64,000 nucleotides of DNA from Lepidodermella squamata (lineage: Eukaryota > Animalia > Gastrotricha). Below are positions 1 to 17,600 of this stretch, piece by piece. The DNA is taken from contig JBLDXI010000002.1 in the NCBI GenBank assembly GCA_047495785.1, positions 2,852,001 to 2,916,000 on the forward strand, read 5' to 3'. Each line of letters opens with the position of its first letter. Within the stretch, counting starts at the first letter, position 1. Below the pieces are notes generated by a model. It searched no databases. It was not told the DNA's origin and saw only the letters and a program-made list of their open reading frames with translations. The position numbers were made by a program, and so were the translations under genes.

Positions 1-3000
1 GCATCCTCTAAATTTTGAATTCCCACCCGCCCCAAATTTTTCTTAATACAGTCGAGCCACCTTAGCTTAGGTCTGCCTCTAGGCCGTTTCCAACCCTCCG
101 GCACGTTCCAATACCGTACTCGGTGGGTTAGCCGTTCGGGGTCCATGCGAGCAACATGGCCGTACCACCTAAGTTGATGTCTTGCTACTATCGAAGATAA
201 TTTTTGAGTTTCACATTTCTCTCTAATATAATCATTCCTAACTCTGTCTCTCAGAGTGACACCGCAAATGCTACGTAGGCATCGCATCTGACAAACGTTC
301 AGTCGCCGTTCATCCTCACTGGTCATCGTCCAATTTTCACCCCCAAATTTCGCAACCGGTTCTACTGTACCTCGAAGACACTTCATTTTTACGCTAATAG
401 GAATAGATTTATTTCCAAAAATATATTTTTTCAAGGCACCGAAAGCTTTGCAGCTTTTCTCTATTCTGGCCCTGATGTCGCTTTTTGAAGCTCCATCTGA
501 GGTAATTATACTACCTAAATATGTGAAGCTACTAACTTCTTCCAGTCGTTCATTGTAAATAATAAAAGGCTCAACAATTTCATCTCCTTTGTTAATAACC
601 ATGAATTTGGTTTTTGGTACATTTATTTTGAGCCCTAGACTCTGGCAAGCCTCAACAAAAATATCGATAAGAAGTTGCATGTCGTTCCTATGCATGGCTA
701 ACAGCCCAGTATCGTCAGCAAAAGCCAAAACATTGAGCCACTCTTCGTCAGTGAGCGGTACTCCGCACTTTTCTAACTCAACTCTCTGGCATACAACGTT
801 GAAGACGCAAATAAATAACAACGGTGATAAAGGGCAGCCCTGTCTGAGCCCTTTTGTGACCCTGAAAGGCTCGCAAGCAACACCACCAACCCTAACCGTT
901 GCTATGCTGTCTCTGTACAAGGCCTTTATGTTTTCGATGAGATTTTGTTCTACTCCCAGTCCCTCTAGCGCTTTCCACACTTCTTCGCGGTCAACAAAGT
1001 CGTAGGCTTTCTCCAAGTCCATAAAAGTAATAAAAAATAATTGCTCAAACTCAACAAATTTTTCTATTAGCTGTTTTAGCATCGCCTATGCCTTTACCTT
1101 CCATGAACCCGTGCTGGTTGTCTTCTAAAATTTTCCGAACTTTTAATCGAAGTTTGCGTTCCAAAATACGAGCGTAACATTTCGCGACTATGCTTATTAA
1201 GCTAATTCCTCGGTAATTCGCACATTTTTTCAAGTCACCTTTCTTGGATATCGGAATCAAAATTAGATTAAGAAAATCGTCAGGAACTCGCCTTTCCGTC
1301 CAAATTCTGTTAAACAGTACATACAGCCACTCTGTTCCTATTTCCTCTATTGCAATTAGCATCTCTTTACGCACCTCGTCTTGACCCGGTGATTTTCCAA
1401 GCTTTTCTTTTTTAAGGGCTTCTACTATTTCGTCGCGCGAGATGTTTTCCATGGCTCGTGCCGGTTCATTTACGTCGCATTGATTTTTGAAACCTTGCTG
1501 AGATTCATTTTCTACTTTTGTGGTCAGTTCAACGCCATCTACTACTCCCATGAAATGTTGCCTCCATCTCCCCGCTACTTTCCCTGCTTCCGTCAAAATT
1601 TCACCGTTCTCCCCTTCAATTACCAACCGTTGTTCCAAACTGCCCGAACCTTTTCTAGCATTTTCAACTATCCGCCTCTTGCGGTTTATCTTTTAAGGCA
1701 TAAAATCCGTCTGCAATCTCGACTTTTGCTTTCTTTTTCGCCTTTTCAACCACAATTTTTTCTTCATCTCTGCACAAGGCATATTCGTCGTATAAAGCTT
1801 TGACTTCCTCGTTATCCACATCCCCCTTTTCCTCCGCCACCCTTCTAGCTTTAGTGAAGGTTTTGAACTTGCGCTTCTTTTCCTTGACTTTATTTTTCAC
1901 CTTATTTTTCCACCAGCGGGTTCTTTTCCCTTTTTTTCGAACTCGCTTGCGCCCGCAAATCTTCTCTGTTTCCTCATTAATGCTCTTGAACTCGAGCCAA
2001 ATTTGCTCAGCGTCAGTCGAGGAGGTTATTCTTTTCAATTTTTCAGCCATTATCTGTTTTAGTCGGCGCGCGTTTTTACCTTTGGCCAAATTTTCATGAG
2101 CGACCCGCGTGACTTCTTCGCTTCCTTCTAAGACTTTCGTCCCGTTGATTGCTAAATTAGCCACTACTAGGTGATGATCAACTCCTAAACATGCCTCTTC
2201 GGCGATATGTGAATCTACAACAAATTTGCGCGCATACTGTGGAATTAGTAGATAATCTATGAATGATCTGCAAAAATAGCTTTTTGTTTCCACCTTCTTC
2301 CTTTTCTTATTAGGTTCCATTTTTCGAAAATAAGTAAAACCACAGTTCGGGTAAAAAGTGTTGGCAAAATATAACTGATTTCTGCATGCAAAATCGAACC
2401 ATCTTTCGCCTTTAGTATTTCCGCTAAGCCCAGCATACTTGCCCACCGTCTGGCTATTTCCATCGTCACTTCGTTCAACAACTCCATTAAGATCGCCGCC
2501 AATCAAAACAATATCATTTTCGGCCCGTGATTTTTCGATTTTTTCAAGTACACTCTCAACTTTTGAAATATAAATATCTAATTCGTCTACATCAGATGAC
2601 GCTGGCGCATATAAATTTACGAAAGAAATTTTTCTTCCAGCCACCTTAATTTCAAGTGTTATTATTCGTTCATCAATTTGTTCGTAGCTCGTGATAACGA
2701 TGTTCGGGTCATCTAAAATACAGAATGCTACTCCAGCCCGGTTAACTTTGCTGCTCGCATCGACCCCGGAATAAATAATAGTCACGCCATCTTGGTGCTT
2801 CTCACCCTTGCCCTTCTTACGAAATTCCTGTAATAAAAGAACATGAATTTTTCGTTCCCTCATCTCCTCCGCAATAGAGGGAATTTTGTTTTTACCCGTT
2901 GATAAATTTTGCGAGCCGTAAGTCAGCATAAAAATTGCCTCTAATAAATCAAGATTTTTCGATTGTTTTTTATGTTTTCGATTTTTCCGCCTTCTTCTCT

Positions 3001-3178
3001 TTTTCCCCACCAATTTAAGACTTTGATTTTGGTTATGATTTCGACCTGACTGCGTATTCTGCAAATCAGACAAATATTTACAAAATTCATTTTTTTCAAC
3101 AAGAATGGCATCATAGTTACTATTTACAAAGTTTTGGATATCATCATTATCAACAATTTCAAACCGGTTATAGTTCAA
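1..3178 (-). pseudogene. LINE ORF2 (endonuclease + reverse transcriptase), frameshifted
   Basis: Split into 1664-3178, 1051-1638 and <1-~1050; the motifs are in the expected order. Confidence 0.9.
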
Positions 3179-3196: not shown

Positions 3197-4342
3197 TCAA
3201 CGTTGTCGTCTGGTTGCGCCTTGAAGCAGTTCACATACCAGAGCCACGAGCTGCGCCTGCCCATGCGCCCCGCCGTCACGTGATTCAAATCCTTGTGGTA
3301 CGTAGCCACGTGATTGATGCCCACGTGACTGATGGCCCCGTGCCTGGTGGTCAAACCGCCTTTGCACTTCGGACTTGCACTCGTTCGCGTAATGGCCAAA
3401 CTCTTCACAGTTGTAGCACTGAATGGTCGCGAGCCGCGTCGGGCAATGACGCCGCAGATGTTGGGTGTCGCCGCAATCGTGACACTCTTTGACCCTTGGC
3501 CTTTGACCTTTCTTGACCTCGTTATCCTTGTCCGTTGTTCCCGTTACCGAGACATCCGGGACCGGCGGGGGTTTTATCGACGCCCGGGTGTCGTTGCCCC
3601 GGCCGCCACGTATCATCGACGGAGGTTCATCCTCTTCATCCTCGCTCTCCACCTTGGCTTCCGTGTCGATGATTTGTTTGATCGAAGACTCATACCGTTT
3701 GAACGGCTTACCATTTTTTAAAATTTCAGCCCCTCGGCGTTTCAGTTGCGATTTTTCCGGGTGACTGTCGATAAAAGAATCGCATATGATCCGGAATTCC
3801 CGTTCGTGTTTCGACTCCCACCAGTCGCACTTAACCTTGTTATCCTTCATTGTTTTCAAGGCTGCGGCTGCTTGTTCTCGGGTGACGAACTTGAATTTCG
3901 CAACGTTGCCCTGCGGTAAAAATACGACATCGGCAACTCCAAAGCCGCTCGCGTCCAGCTTGCGCTTGGTGTCGTACACACTCTGGCGGTCTTTCCCGAA
4001 CACAGCTAGTGACACGCGGGCATTCTCTTTTTGAACGAGATGTAGCTCCGCTTCGACTTCTTGAAAACGTTTCTCCGGTGGCACCCATTGGGCTGTTTTC
4101 ACCGCCTCCTTCAATTCATCATGAAGTTTGAGACAATTAGCTCGCGATTCCAGCAGATCATCCTTCAGCGATGACAGCTCTGCCAGAACTCGCCGATGTT
4201 TTGATCGTACTGCCTCGATTCCGTCCAGTAAACTCGCCTCATCGGTCCCGAGTTCTTCAAGAATCGCCGTGTCGGTGTTTTTGACCAACTGAATCATGAT
4301 GTGAATCGCGTCTTCCGTCTCCATCATTTCAATATTTTTCAT
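3197..4342 (-). CDS. LINE ORF1, gag-like nucleic-acid-binding protein
   Basis: 381-aa open frame with N-terminal coiled-coil-like region and knuckles CHDCGDTQHLRRHC and CYNCEEFGHYANEC, directly upstream of the endonuclease ORF. Confidence 0.88.
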   Translation of the reverse strand: MKNIEMMETEDAIHIMIQLVKNTDTAILEELGTDEASLLDGIEAVRSKHRRVLAELSSLKDDLLESRANCLKLHDELKEAVKTAQWVPPEKRFQEVEAELHLVQKENARVSLAVFGKDRQSVYDTKRKLDASGFGVADVVFLPQGNVAKFKFVTREQAAAALKTMKDNKVKCDWWESKHEREFRIICDSFIDSHPEKSQLKRRGAEILKNGKPFKRYESSIKQIIDTEAKVESEDEEDEPPSMIRGGRGNDTRASIKPPPVPDVSVTGTTDKDNEVKKGQRPRVKECHDCGDTQHLRRHCPTRLATIQCYNCEEFGHYANECKSEVQRRFDHQARGHQSRGHQSRGYVPQGFESRDGGAHGQAQLVALVCELLQGATRRQR

Positions 4343-4349
4343 AAAAAAT

Positions 4350-4382
4350 CTCAGAAAATTTAATATTCAATCGCAGATATTT
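4350..4382 (-). other. Copy of the spliced-leader exon (SL-A) at the LINE 5' end
   Basis: AAATATCTGCGATTGAATATTAAATTTTCTGAG is identical (33/33) to 58614-58646. The match stops exactly at the GT donor of the IGS gene and lies 7 nt before the ORF1 ATG. Confidence 0.85.
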
Positions 4383-4939
4383 CAATCGTGTATGAAAACG
4401 AACCAATTGTTAGCGACTCGGAAAAGGCTGAAGTTTTCAGGAAACAGTTTGCTGGTGCGTATAACAAAGAAAAATTTGAGCCTACTAGTAATTTCAAGGC
4501 TGTATCGGATTGTTTACAGAATATTGAATTTTCGCCCGAGTGTGTTTATGCTGTGTTGTGTGGAATGAAAGAAAAGCCAATAGGCGGGCCTGATAATCTA
4601 CCGGCGGTTCTAATTAAGAAACTTGCTTGTTCTATATCGATTCCTGTTGCTTTCATTTTCAGCCTCTCGTTAAACAGTGGGGAAATACCCTTAGTTTGGA
4701 AACACGCCAATGTTACACCAATTTTCAAGCGTAACGGTGATGCTTCATGTGCTGGAAACTATCGCCCAATTAGTCTGACTTGTATTCTTTGTAAAACGCA
4801 GGAAACTATTGATAAGGAACATCTTCTTCTATATCTATACAGAAATAACCTGATCTCTAAAAACCAGTACGGCTTCTTATCCCGTCGAAGTTGCGAAACG
4901 CAACTACTATCATGCATAGCAGACTGGCTGAAAATTCTC
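4383..4939 (+). mobile_element. CR1/L2-group LINE ORF2 fragment (upstream part)
   Basis: WKHANVTPIFK...NYRPISLT...NQYGF...RSCETQL motifs. Confidence 0.9.
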
Positions 4940-5800
4940 AACCAGATGCTGGATGTTTAGGCGCACATTTGTTCCGATAGGAACGAAAGTTCCCACCCCA
5001 TTGCCATTTTCCGCGCCCTTTCCCCTTTCTTTCATTACTTAAATGGAAGACCCCCCCAATTCCAAAAGGGCAGGGTTTTTCATCCGATTTCCTTGCAAGT
5101 TATATCAATCGATAGCCCTTGACGAGAATAGCTTATAAAAGATTTTCCAGCTGTTTTCGCCGGACCATTTTGGAGAAATTGGCAAAAAACTGCATTTTTT
5201 CTACTTTTCTGGGGACATGACCCAATTTAAACTAGGTCAATGCGTTGCTATTTTTAGCTGCGCAATCACTAATATATGGCCAATACTGCGCGCATCACTA
5301 ATAATAGAGATATACTGATCGCGTTTTGGCCTTGGCCACTGTTACTCGGGCTTGCATACAATTTGGCCTCCCTCCTCGGGGAGGGAGGCTTTCGATATAT
5401 AATTGCTTACTTCCATTTCCTTAAAGATGTAAATTCGCGCAACAAAGGCTTAATTGAGATTTGATTGAGGAAAATTTAACGATGGATTATTATCGACATA
5501 TAATCAATGATTATAATCATTCCATCGACATAATTGCTACAGTTGTTTGGTTTATTATGTTCCGGATGAAGCTTATTACCTGCTCTGATTTGGACATTTC
5601 ATACTGCATTCGATAACCGGCGACCGCTTTATATTGCTCTATATGATACTACCAGAAGAAAGTTTATCTGGAAACGTGGCGAATTCCTTGGTTTTTTTAT
5701 TGGCAGAATCCGCTGGTTACGGGGTCTTGCCGTTTTTCCGTCTGTCCTCATGTCGGAGAAAAAGGTCGAAAGGTGTGATATCTGATTCCCGAATTCAGAC

Positions 5801-9687: not shown

Positions 9688-10876
9688 TAGTGATATATCT
9701 CGATCTATCAAAAGCCTTTGACGTTGTTCCGATTGTTTTATTACTGTCTAAGCTATGCGATATCAACATATGTGGCAAGCTTCACGATTGGATTAAAGCC
9801 TTCCTTTCCGATCGTTTCTTCAGAACTGTTGTTAACTCAAGCGTCTCGGACTGGTCATCTGTTACCTCTGGCGTGCCTCAGGGCTCGGTTTTGGGCCCAC
9901 TGCTTTTCCTGATTTTTACTGCCGATGTCAATGAGCTGATCAAGACGTCCCTTGCAAAATTCTTCGCAGATGACACGAAGCTCTACCACGCCATTCGCAG
10001 CCTAGCCGATTGCATTGAGTTGCAGCGGGACCTGGACAAAATCATCGAATGGTTTGAAGAAAACGGCCTATCCGTGAATTCAAAGAAGTGTGTTGTACTT
10101 TGGCTTGGTAGCAGAGGTCTCTCCTTTAAATTCAGGATAAAAGGTGTCGAACTAAATGTCGTTGAATCTGTGAAGGATCTTGGAATAATTCTTGACAAGG
10201 ATTTGAATTTTTCTGAGCATTGTGAAGCACTCGCATTAAAGTGCCATCGTATGAACGGCCTAATCTGTAAATCATTTAGTTCCAAATCCCTTCGCCTCAA
10301 GGCTTATAAGACCTACACAATGTCAAGACTCGACTACTGCCCTTCTGTGTACTCTCCATATCTGCTCAAGGATATTCAGGCATTAGAATCTGTACAAGCC
10401 CGTTTCACGAAAAGATTATTATATCGCAGCTCATACTACTCGACAATTGAAGGTGCCTCATATGAAGAAAGACTTGGGAAATTAGGAATGTTATCCTTAG
10501 AGATGCGTCGTTTTCTGCACGATCTAGCTCTCTGCCATAAGCTTTATCTGAATATGGTGGACGAACAATTTTCTCGTTTCTTCACTATATCGAAAAACGG
10601 TCGCTTGCCAAATCATGCGGTTGTGATGGAGAAGTTCAGAAAAATGAACTATGTATCAATATTCATTTGTGCGACGTTTGCGTGCGGCGTGGAATTCTAT
10701 ACCCTCCGAGGTCGTAAATAGCTCTCATTTTAATTTTGTAAAATATACGAAAAACATTGCCTGTGAACTAGAACAATATACTATATCGGTGGTGAGGCGC
10801 CTCGACCCTTTTTAATTGCTAAACGTCGCGAGACAAATTGCAACAATAAATCAGTGTATCAGTGTGTATCAGTGTA
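9688..10876 (+). mobile_element. CR1/L2-group LINE RT and 3' end
   Basis: IYLDLSKAFD, GVPQGSVLGPLLF, FADDTK, KDLGI; AATAAA followed by a (TATCAGTG)n-like tail. Confidence 0.92.
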
Positions 10877-14619: not shown

Positions 14620-17600
14620 ATGGCGTTTTCTGAACTTGCGCGCGCTGCTTCTTCATATGTTCAAAATGGTACCTCAACTCAACCTAAGAGACAGCCCTGG
14701 CTCCCCAGCCCTCCGGTGAATTGCCACAAAGACCTCGTCCATCTGGGGGAGCTGGACAGCAACAGAATCTGGTGGCGAGAACTAGTCGAAAGAATTTGTG
14801 CCTCTACTGTGCAAGCGGCAAAACCGTGAACGGGATGGAAAGCCGTCATCATCATCATCACCTCCACTCAAGGGGAAGCTAGATGTTGGGACCTAGGCTG
14901 TTCACTTGGACCAGTGTGAAGCTATTCTATCGACTGCTACTTACTTCTGCTATGTGGCAGAACGCAGAACTAGTTATACGTCATTCGTGTCTCGGCATCG
15001 TTTCTTTCATTTGAAGCAATTGAGGCAAAACGTTGACGACGGACTCATTACTCCGGCACGACAATAGCTAATTGGATTTAAAGCCAATTAAGCGATTACG
15101 CGTTGACTCCTTTGTCCAGTTTATACTCCGACGGTTGACTCGAGATTTTGCGAGCTTTGACCCCACTGATTTGAAGTACACGGTGCAAAAAATTCCTTCC
15201 GCTGTCCACCTTCGGCGCCTCTTGTGCCTCCTGTGCAAATATGGGCTCTTATCAGCTTTCATCTCCATGGTTAACTTCAGACTTCGAAGTTCTGAGCTTC
15301 ATTGCATCAAATGGAGGCTTCTAGGGATTATCTACGACCCTCTTTACTCACGTTGCCTCGCAGATATTTCGCAGATCTGAAGCCCAAAGGAAATTGTCGC
15401 TGCAACCGTACTCGGCTCATCTATCTAATAGGAATTTATGTCGGCCATGTCGTTGAAGCTAGGTGCGGCAACCTTGGCCTTTGTTACATGTTACTTGTGT
15501 ACCGATCTATATTACGGAATTACCATCGACCACCACCACCACTGCTTTTTTTATATTTTATGACATCGCAACATGCGCGATTTTATCAACACTGAAGACG
15601 CGAAACCTGTTTTTCGAACAGCAGCAATGCAATACTGGAAAAGGATTGATGGATTTTTGACTGTGCGATCATTACTGGTGAATATTAGGACTTGGAAGAA
15701 ACCAGTCGCCTCTGAATTGGTGTTTTGTGTATAATGGTTGTCAACTAATTACTTATCTGAAGTTTAACGAGAAATGGCAAATGCTTAATTCTTTTGGTCC
15801 GATGACTGCGAAGTGCGTGTTCGTTGGACCTCATCCATCAAGCGTGCACTCCAGCTATGCATTGCTCACAACCTTGCACATGGACCTCCTTTTAATTGGT
15901 GTCTCGTGAGTTCCCGCATGAAACTCCTTAGTTCCACGGGATTTCTCGTCGTTGTCATCAATGACCAGTTATCACTTGAGGAAATGAAATTGGCTTTACA
16001 GTGTCTGATGTCAACAGCTGCAATGCTGAAAGAGTGTTATAGACGCTGAGCTACCGGCTGTCGATGTGAGCGGAACATGAAACCAAGCTTATCAAATAAT
16101 AATCAGCCTAATTGGAGTGCTGAAGACTCGATGGTGAATGGATACATTGATCATGTTGTTTCTCCATCTGCAACCGGGTTGGCGCTTGGAACTACAATCA
16201 CTCGATCACCGATCTATTGAATGCCCATAATACGGAATTGAATCGCCAGTCGCTAATGTCGCTACAGCTCCCAAACAATCGAAAAAGCGATGGAGCAGTG
16301 GAACATCGCCATGAAAAATGAATACCAAGTACTGCGTAATATTTTAGCCGACAGCTGCCTGGGTTTCGAGGAACACGGAGGATTTGTCCACAGTAAATGC
16401 AGGTAGCGGGTACCACGCCCTTCGTACCTAGCTAATAATGTTACTAACTGAATTTAATGCTGTATTAAACAGCCTTGTAAACTCGCAACTCAATTACTTC
16501 TGACTTCATTCTCGACTTAGGCTCTGCTGCAATAACTCGAATATATCTGTGTCCTGTCGACAAGAGATCCGGATGAAGTAGGGTGGATCAAATTGAAATG
16601 CTCTTTCAATGTCTCCATTGTAATCGGTCTACGCTGTGTTGCAACAACCCGGAGCGGATCAGAATGATCGTGATCACTCTTTTGAGCGCAACCTGAGAAT
16701 AGAAATAATGTGCGACAGATTATTTGATCGTTTTTCATCAAGTTGGAATTCAACGGCCTCCGATCAAAAGTTTCCCATCATATTCGGCACATTTTGTTGC
16801 GGCAGAGCTTCAACGACTAGTAATGGCGCGAGAGAATGTTACCTGTTTGATTTTGCTGCCTCGCAACTTTGCGAATCAACTTTTCTACGGCAAATATTAT
16901 AGTTGTTCTGTTATATGATTCTAGAATTTGAAGATGTTGAAAATGGAAATTCCGAATTCGGCATTGAAGTAATATTGGAAACTCGGTGATGTGTTTTTCT
17001 CGACCCTGGTCAGTCGCCGTAGAATGAATCTCATCCGTTCATCGGAGCAACGATCTGTGTTGACTGGTCGTCTCCTCGAAATATCAAGAAGCGCAAAACA
17101 ACGGAATGTCAGGCAGCGAATTCATCCGGAAGATTCAAGCAAAGCTGAGTCAAAATGGCTTATGCTACAAGTCACATAGCTGGAAATCAATTAGTTACTA
17201 TACCGTTCCTCTAATGCTCACAAGTTTCGACTCGAATTTTTTTGTCGGCCACAGCTCTCACTGTTCTAAAATTAGGGATATTGCCGTCGAAATTTGTGGA
17301 TCAATTATCCTTCAGCTGGCGTTTGACCGTTTCAATTGGTCGACTTCAAGCGAACTTCGCTCCTGGTAATTACGATTCTTATCTTGGGATCGGTGAAAAC
17401 ATCGCCAGACCTAAAGCAGATTCTGATTCTGGGCGATACTCGAAGGAAACTTAAATCGAGGTGATGGGGTATCATTATTTGATATCTAATCAATTGCCAC
17501 ATGTTCACGTCATTTTGGAACTCGTTGTTGGAAAGATGGACCGCGCTGATTTGCCATTGATTCTCAACTCCTTCAATAACTATTTGAAATGGCGCTCAAT

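Follow-up and report, generated by a model that had tools for sequence, protein, structure and literature searches.

Spliced-leader exons at the 5' ends of dispersed LINE copies in the gastrotrich Lepidodermella squamata, probable traces of reverse-transcribed, trans-spliced element RNA

A LINE on the minus strand at the left edge of the analyzed DNA (64,000 nt of contig JBLDXI010000002.1 of Lepidodermella squamata, hereafter "the window") starts with an exact copy of the exon of a putative spliced-leader RNA gene, SL-A, which is encoded in the rDNA intergenic spacer of the same window. The leader is part of the inserted unit, it alternates with a second putative leader, SL-B, among near-identical copies of the element at unrelated sites, and it is shared by the 5' ends of several other LINE families. 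The best overall explanation, which we regard as highly probable, is that LINE RNA tagged with a host leader was reverse-transcribed up to its 5' end; according to the DNA-level evidence presented below, the leader would have been added to this RNA by trans-splicing.

The features of the window copy and of its insertion site are as follows (window coordinates, with the strand in brackets):
1..3178 (minus): ORF2, with endonuclease-like and reverse transcriptase domains, delineated from the ORFs and from comparison with sibling copies
3197..4342 (minus): intact ORF1, encoding 381 aa and CCHC zinc knuckles (Pfam zf-CCHC at E = 2.3e-5, obtained with the ORF1 of identical length in the sibling copy L039)
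4343..4349 (minus): 7-nt 5' UTR, ATTTTTT, separating the leader from the start codon of ORF1; the putative trans-splice junction is at its first base and is common to the copies with SL-A and with SL-B
4350..4382 (minus): SL-A relic, an exact copy of the 33-nt SL exon that forms the 5' end of the LINE insertion (33/33 to 58614-58646), inside the insert bounded by target-site duplications (TSDs)
4383..4384 (minus): TG on the element strand, two additional bases that separate the TSD from leader base 1, as read at the junction
4385..4394 (no strand assigned): right-hand copy of the 10-bp TSD, ATCGTGTATG; its left-hand counterpart is found 330-339 bases ahead of the window start (L037 6661-6670)
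4385..4960 (plus): host of the insertion, ORF2 of a different LINE (RVT_1; Exo_endo_phos_2 on the upstream part)

The window contains exactly two copies of the 33-mer AAATATCTGCGATTGAATATTAAATTTTCTGAG, one at 4350-4382 and the other at 58614-58646, which are both minus-strand copies with no mismatches, in agreement with the 33/33 identity claimed in an earlier note on this DNA. The other particulars of that note were found to be accurate as well: the match starts at the sequence common to both spliced-leader candidates of the intergenic spacer (SL-A and SL-B have the same first 11 nt), it ends at a GT donor (GTTAGTATC directly follows the 33-mer at 58614-58646), and the 7-nt spacing to ORF1 corresponds to ATTTTTT, followed by the ATG of the 381-aa ORF. 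The LINE copy is accompanied by neither an SL promoter nor an SL intron, as the note had also stated: the flanks of 4350-4382, read and compared, consist of the ORF2 of the other LINE upstream, in place of the SL gene upstream sequence, and contain no SL intron sequence after the leader. A chance match can be discarded on account of the shuffling test (none of 100 dinucleotide-preserving shuffles gave a match, and 0 chance matches are expected), the genomic distribution of the 33-mer and the leader-headed loci described below. An unrelated dispersed repeat can be discarded as the source of the 33-mer as well, with the genomic matches falling mostly into rDNA units and the dispersed ends being the heads of different sequences. 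The 11-mer AAATATCTGCG has a fourth copy in the window, at 15359-15369 on the minus strand, with AGATCTGCG before it and AGGCAACGTGAGT after it, which could be a chance occurrence or a heavily shortened relic.

The putative SL-A and SL-B genes are located between two rRNA units, in the following arrangement:
53849-57568: LSU rRNA (Rfam)
57801..57919 (minus): 5S rRNA gene, on the same strand and in the same spacer as both putative SL genes (Rfam RF00001, 114 bits)
58146..58177 (minus): exon of the putative SL-B gene, 32 nt, with a GT donor directly after it and then AAUUUGA and a 3' hairpin
58614..58646 (minus): exon of the putative SL-A gene, likewise within the rDNA intergenic spacer; after it come a GT donor, a U-rich Sm-like stretch and then a 3' hairpin
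59722-61538: SSU rRNA of the next unit (Rfam)

The SL-A exon ends in CTGAG and is followed by GTTAGT, the U-rich GUAUUUUAG stretch and a GAAUGC/GCAUUC hairpin. The SL-B exon, AAATATCTGCGTATCGATTTTCGAATTCTAAG, ends in CTAAG and is followed by GTATGA (GTATGATC stands directly after the exon), AAUUUGA and a GAGGGC/GCCCUC hairpin. A U-rich Sm-like stretch is common to both genes, the 3' hairpin comprises 6 bp and the donor lies within the first stem-loop in both of them, and each leader contains a single AG, at its 3' end. The folding energies of the SL-A and SL-B genes were not better than those of shuffled sequences, the Rfam analysis of the whole window at gathering thresholds reported only rRNAs and no match to an SL family, and a full-text literature search with the 3' end of the leader and the term "spliced leader" found no paper. 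The anatomy of the genes, taken together with the retrocopies, suggests that SL-A and SL-B are genuine SL RNA genes. The SL-A 33-mer has 501 matches in the genome at up to 2 mismatches, most of them ~8.46 kb apart in rDNA arrays, and the SL-A gene is present in every rDNA spacer. SL genes inside rDNA clusters are mentioned in a chaetognath genome paper (PMC12460157). In the window, the first 5.8S and LSU genes come after two short SSU rRNA pieces (52708-53068; model positions 1160-1660 and 1667-1823), and hence the rDNA array starts within the window with a truncated unit, bordering a LINE-rich flank.

Comparison with four other copies revealed that the LINE unit encompasses 4.7 kb from leader base 1 to an (ATGTT)n tail, the window copy extending ~329 bases past the window start, where it ends in such a tail. 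Its limits (C2:2851671-2856384) are flanked by the TSD, and the two flanks, when joined, form one continuous reading frame of the different LINE that hosts the insertion. The joined 82-nt flank sequence is uninterrupted at C110 and C25 (82/82) and at C34 (95%), which represent three paralogous empty sites, while in C2 it is split into positions 1-44 and 34-82, ~4.7 kb apart. The TSD and the uninterrupted empty sites indicate that the leader belongs to the inserted unit and not to a pre-existing SL gene that was hit by the LINE. The G that adjoins leader base 1 at 4383..4384 may be a copied RNA cap. The ORF2 of the window copy is broken by deletions of 17 nt and 11 nt near 1677 and 1083, respectively. 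In the intact ORF2 of the sibling copy L039, the reverse transcriptase domain was identified with high confidence (Pfam RVT_1, E = 1.7e-32), and the endonuclease-like domain is suggested by a match to Exo_endo_phos of fitting position and length, with a score below the cut-off (E = 0.0056, 16.9 bits; cut-off 24.5 bits).

A full SL-B relic (L037 4461-4492, corresponding to C2:2849461-2849492, plus strand) also forms the head of the LINE that hosts the insertion, ~2.5 kb before the window start and ~6.9 kb upstream of the insertion. This relic is followed by ATAGGAGACGTGTAGTGCG, with a G before leader base 1 and a partial AAATATCTG 11 nt further upstream, and the SL-B head of the host LINE was found also at C110:59784. 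Another reverse transcriptase ORF is located at 9690-10721 of the window on the plus strand (RVT_1, E = 2.9e-20), possibly the host LINE continuing beyond further insertions located between ~4960 and 9690.

The first 300 bases of the element match six places in the 121-Mb genome, five of which are 5'-complete. These five copies have different flanks, each has its own TSD of ~8-17 bp (the duplication of the C7 copy is ambiguous), and all of them carry an (ATGTT)n tail. They start as follows:
window copy (C2): full SL-A
L038 (C7): full SL-A
L040 (C4:1.48 Mb): SL-A, the last 19 nt only
L039 (C4:1.68 Mb): SL-B without its first 4 nt, with an identical junction (leader, then ATTTTTTATG)
L041 (C23): near-full SL-B, then 37 extra nt, then ATTTTTGATG

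The leader junction of the window copy is repeated in three of its four siblings. Four copies differ by 0.2-0.5% and L040 by 1.4%, and the tree of the copies is a star, with no split according to the leader type. Near-identical copies at unrelated sites that exhibit one junction, two leader types and variable shortening are what the reverse transcription of trans-spliced RNA predicts. The alignment of the 5' ends of the genomic copies, which the earlier note had proposed, thus yielded full SL-A, shortened SL-A and SL-B heads, always as single relics, and no tandem truncated leaders were seen in this family. The opposite pattern named there, other copies with an SL promoter upstream and an SL intron downstream, was sought and is absent: no copy of the window family contains SL gene upstream or intron sequence. 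Together with the TSD, the empty sites and the other families described below, the sibling copies support the proposal of that note that the RNA of the LINE was trans-spliced and then fully reverse-transcribed, as judged from these DNA-level traces. Site-specific insertion into SL genes was rejected for this family, considering its five unrelated sites and the lack of SL gene upstream and intron sequences. Searches with the 3' end of the element identified ~8 young copies and some 35 older fragments, the 3' ends outnumbering the 5' ends.

The L041 copy (head at L041 1311-1365, corresponding to C23:253311-253365; counterpart at C34:177178-177231) requires a separate description, as it misfits the simple re-splicing model discussed further below. 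Its 37 extra nt are unique in the genome, and the first 32 of them match C34:177187-177218. At C34, these 32 nt are preceded by TGTTTATAG (TTTATAG), a standard 3' splice site, and followed by CAGCGTGTCC; they sit between two acceptor-like sites, ending in TTTATAG and TTTTTACAG, respectively. SL-B in L041 occupies the exact place of the AG acceptor at C34, which is the most direct DNA-level sign of the presumed addition of leaders at AG acceptors. The last 5 extra nt (AAATC) lie outside the match to C34. The interpretation of the 37 nt as the family's own 5' UTR was rejected, given the uniqueness of the 37-mer and the position of the C34 counterpart of its first 32 nt, directly after an AG acceptor. 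The C34 piece could have come either from read-through from a LINE insertion at C34 that is absent from the assembly, or from a template switch.

L041, with its succession of SL-B, 32 nt of a C34 transcript, 5 nt and the LINE, could also be viewed as a chimera generated by a LINE reverse transcriptase that jumps from the end of the LINE RNA to the SL RNA or to another leader-capped mRNA, in the manner of U6/L1 chimeras. Comparable L1 chimeras are known (bioRxiv 10.1101/2025.02.02.635956). As an explanation of the leader heads in general, however, such template switching is extremely improbable: the leader ends exactly at the exon end and the SL intron is never attached, while a switch onto the SL RNA would bring the intron along, and the junction on the LINE side is shared by four copies and does not vary inside any one of the other families, while a scatter of junctions would be predicted. 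The U6/L1 chimeras differ from the present case in that they comprise a whole small RNA joined to a variably truncated LINE, whereas here only the exon is found, at a fixed junction.

Reverse transcription of leader-tagged RNA is consistent also with the genome-wide distribution of the leaders. Dispersed leader ends that are not followed by G comprise 28 cases of SL-A and 34 cases of SL-B, which differ in their flanks and in the extent of 5' shortening. The dispersed SL-A ends stand before at least 14 different sequences, and most of these sequences encode ORF1-like proteins, followed by an endonuclease or a reverse transcriptase. Among the loci tested with Pfam, five exhibit an endonuclease domain a short way downstream, each in a different family (L054 weakly), and a sixth exhibits a zinc knuckle. 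At least six further LINE families, including that of the host LINE, start with SL-A or SL-B at fixed junctions, and in at least five families SL-A and SL-B are joined at the same base; the sequence of the SL-B-headed loci was read 20 nt past the leader, and the count of families is a lower bound. In the second family (ATTTGTTAAAC...), all six 5'-complete copies are leader-headed, five of them with SL-A and one with SL-B.

The exons that follow the leader mostly start with A (24/28 for SL-A and 33/34 for SL-B), and within the first 30 nt after the leader at loci L046-L068, unrelated families share the motif ATTTnTTAA...ATAATT in one group and ATAGGRGACG in another. The shared motifs and the initial A could represent a common 5' UTR signal or an acceptor preference. 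Two loci have odd heads: L061 (C25:1411838) combines an inverted copy of the leader start, a shortened SL-A and a repeat of its last 11 nt (TTTTTTCTGAG), while L058 (C20:3091415) starts with a full SL-A and has a partial TCTGCGATTGAA located 15 nt upstream of it. Such heads may go back to earlier rounds or to inverted 5' ends.

A separate set of LINEs was found in the SL genes themselves, behind the SL promoter, at the precise boundary between the SL-A exon and intron or 10-15 nt inside the intron: L065 (C47:68707), in which ORF1 and an endonuclease-like ORF2 come directly after the leader, and L010, L014, L015 and L021, located in rDNA units of C5 and C17. Such junctions could arise by pairing of a leader-ended cDNA with the genomic SL exon. 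The existence of these LINEs at the SL-A donor or shortly behind it speaks for an alternative scenario, in which a LINE inserted at the exon-intron border of an SL gene would be co-transcribed from the SL promoter, and the resulting leader-LINE fusion would spread with no trans-splicing involved. We nonetheless consider this very improbable, since no copy of the window family or the ATTTGTTAAAC family has an SL promoter in front of it, the window LINE is found at five unrelated sites, and exact insertion into both an SL-A gene and an SL-B gene would be required in each of at least five families. Moreover, the LINEs at the donor belong to different families, the donor family is not represented by dispersed leader-headed copies in the SL-A list, and in L041 SL-B stands in place of a normal AG acceptor.

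A G precedes leader base 1 in 7 of the 13 full-length SL-A relics (binomial p = 0.007 versus a base frequency of 0.2; the G content of the window is 0.22). An extra G at L1 insertions is a known trace of cap copying. The same first base in the 13 full-length relic loci, together with the conserved motifs that follow the leader in several families, could alternatively mean that the relic acts as an internal promoter or a determinant of the start site, with transcription initiated at leader base 1 and the leader simply inherited by the progeny; the SL exon is known to be an intragenic promoter element in the nematode Ascaris. This explanation also appears improbable, if somewhat less so than co-transcription, since the leader type changes between copies that are only 0.2-0.5% apart, shortened relics are found on copies with intact ORFs, and the upstream region of the SL gene is absent.

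The mechanism that we propose would operate as follows. A 4.7-kb LINE that encodes ORF1 along with an endonuclease-like domain and a reverse transcriptase, and that can insert at many sites, would be transcribed, and its transcript would receive the host SL-A or SL-B, encoded in the rDNA spacer, by trans-splicing at the AG directly before ATTTTTT-ATG. The leader-capped LINE RNA would then be the template for target-primed reverse transcription. Copying up to the RNA's 5' end would leave the leader as the initial 33 bases of the resulting DNA copy, in some cases with a cap-derived G before it, while an early stop would produce a shortened leader. Finally, the pyrimidine-rich end of the relic and its only AG could serve as the acceptor for the next round, in which read-through transcripts would be re-capped with a fresh leader.

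The last step is the most speculative one. The pyrimidine-rich stretch before the terminal AG of each leader (TTTTCTGAG in SL-A and ATTCTAAG in SL-B) resembles the acceptors at C34 (TTTATAG and TTTTTACAG). With the AG present only at the leader end, re-splicing would replace the relic without a trace, which fits the absence of tandem relics. The re-formation of an acceptor by the leader end TTTTCTGAG, as put forward in the earlier note, is consistent with these findings, and we regard the chances for and against it as about even. A broader hypothesis, to which we would assign slightly less than an even chance, is that the LINE families have no promoters of their own and that each insertion rebuilds the acceptor, at which read-through RNA would be trans-spliced, provided with a fresh SL-A or SL-B at random, and rendered translatable and competent for retrotransposition; this would constitute a self-renewing cycle common to many families.

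All eleven 5'-complete copies in two families (11/11) are leader-headed, and no leaderless master copy was identified in the assembly for either the window family or the ATTTGTTAAAC family. A leaderless master located outside the assembly (in an unassembled region or in the other haplotype) could produce the same pattern. The main rival of the self-renewing step, and of this step only, therefore invokes one or a few master copies, in which an extended 5' UTR would contain a promoter as well as a genuine outron with an acceptor, and whose leader-headed copies would be processed, non-propagating by-products. Comparable by-products are the spliced integrated copies of L1 (SpIREs). The star-like tree of the four copies that are 0.2-0.5% apart fits a single source, both leader types are found on near-identical progeny, and an ORF1 fragment with 89% identity at C36 is preceded by unrelated sequence before the ATG, all of which speaks for dead-end copies. 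On the other hand, the leader is found on 5/5 of the 5'-complete copies in the window family and 6/6 in the second family, the copies with intact ORFs are themselves leader-headed (L039 and L040, in which both ORF1 and ORF2 are intact, with an ORF2 of 1087-1088 aa), and a hidden master would be needed for each of the many families. On balance, we regard the dead-end scenario as rather unlikely, although it deserves much more consideration than the other alternatives discussed above.

Database searches revealed only remote relatives of the element. The ORF2 protein search reported sequences with at most 30% identity, whereas no match was found for ORF1, either in the homologue search or in the exact look-up in public assemblies. 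The LINE sequence is present in public sequencing runs, namely in a DNA-like contig set (with records up to 130 kb) and in a metagenome that contains three LINE reads, on ORF1, and a 36-nt leader-like contig; neither of them shows transcript starts. Scans of metagenomes with SL-A and with SL-B each returned no match.

LINEs linked to spliced leaders are known from several organisms. SLACS, CZAR and CRE from trypanosomatids and NeSL-1 from C. elegans are specific for SL genes, in which they insert at a fixed site with the aid of a restriction-like endonuclease, and their transcripts begin with leader bases. The window LINE resembles them in its physical linkage to a spliced-leader sequence, but it is dispersed, it has an AP-endonuclease-like domain and it carries the exon only. 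The SL-gene-specific group is mentioned in two publications (PMC4640811, PMC3636483). R2 and L1Tc are examples of LINEs with a 5' HDV-like ribozyme (PMC3185411, PMC4035085); here the similarity lies in a defined 5' end of the LINE, obtained from a read-through co-transcript with no upstream promoter. The difference is that R2 and L1Tc use their own ribozyme and gain an uncapped end, whereas in the present case the host spliceosome would act and the end would bear a capped leader.

A further analogy is provided by dinoflagellates, whose retrogenes carry relic spliced leaders that are spliced again at an AG within the relic itself (Slamovits and Keeling 2008, as presented in PMC3229502 and PMC6050394). 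The two systems are alike in that a DNA-encoded leader at the 5' end of a retrocopy marks a reverse-transcribed, presumably trans-spliced RNA, and in that the relic would be amenable to re-splicing. They differ in the cargo, which consists of host genes in dinoflagellates and of the autonomous LINE itself, in an animal, in the present case. The internal AG of the dinoflagellate leader gives rise to tandem truncated relics, whereas here the AG is found only at the 3' end and there are no regular tandem relics. In Hydra, ~30% of the Iso-Seq reads of transposable elements carry the host leader (PMC12220107). Hydra elements thus also make use of host trans-splicing, but this is an observation at the RNA level only, with no leaders reported as fixed at the genomic 5' ends of LINEs, in contrast to the TSD-bearing genomic copies described here. 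In Schistosoma mansoni, the leader is present in six gene models of transposable elements and the existence of trans-spliced, retro-transcribed elements was suggested, with the caveat of a possible assembly artefact (PMC5832876); unlike in the present work, this was raised as a possibility only, and TSDs, empty sites or family-wide junctions were not given. A full-text literature search identified no description of autonomous animal LINE families with systematic host-leader heads backed by TSDs and empty sites. The leader-headed LINE copies are a trait of several families in this genome and one that is barely documented in animals.

Copying of a LINE loses the sequence upstream of the transcription start, so that the acquisition of a promoter, or of a 5' end that is defined and capped, poses a central problem for these elements. 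The known solutions include internal promoters, 5' ribozymes and insertion into transcribed genes. If our interpretation is true, the LINEs of L. squamata would represent a further solution, in which the 5' end and the cap are taken from the host leader and the splice acceptor is possibly rebuilt with each insertion. The relics mark the exact 5' end of two new putative leaders in a poorly known animal. They also provide a sequence tag for recently retrotransposed RNAs in its genome, and offer locus-specific tests of re-splicing.
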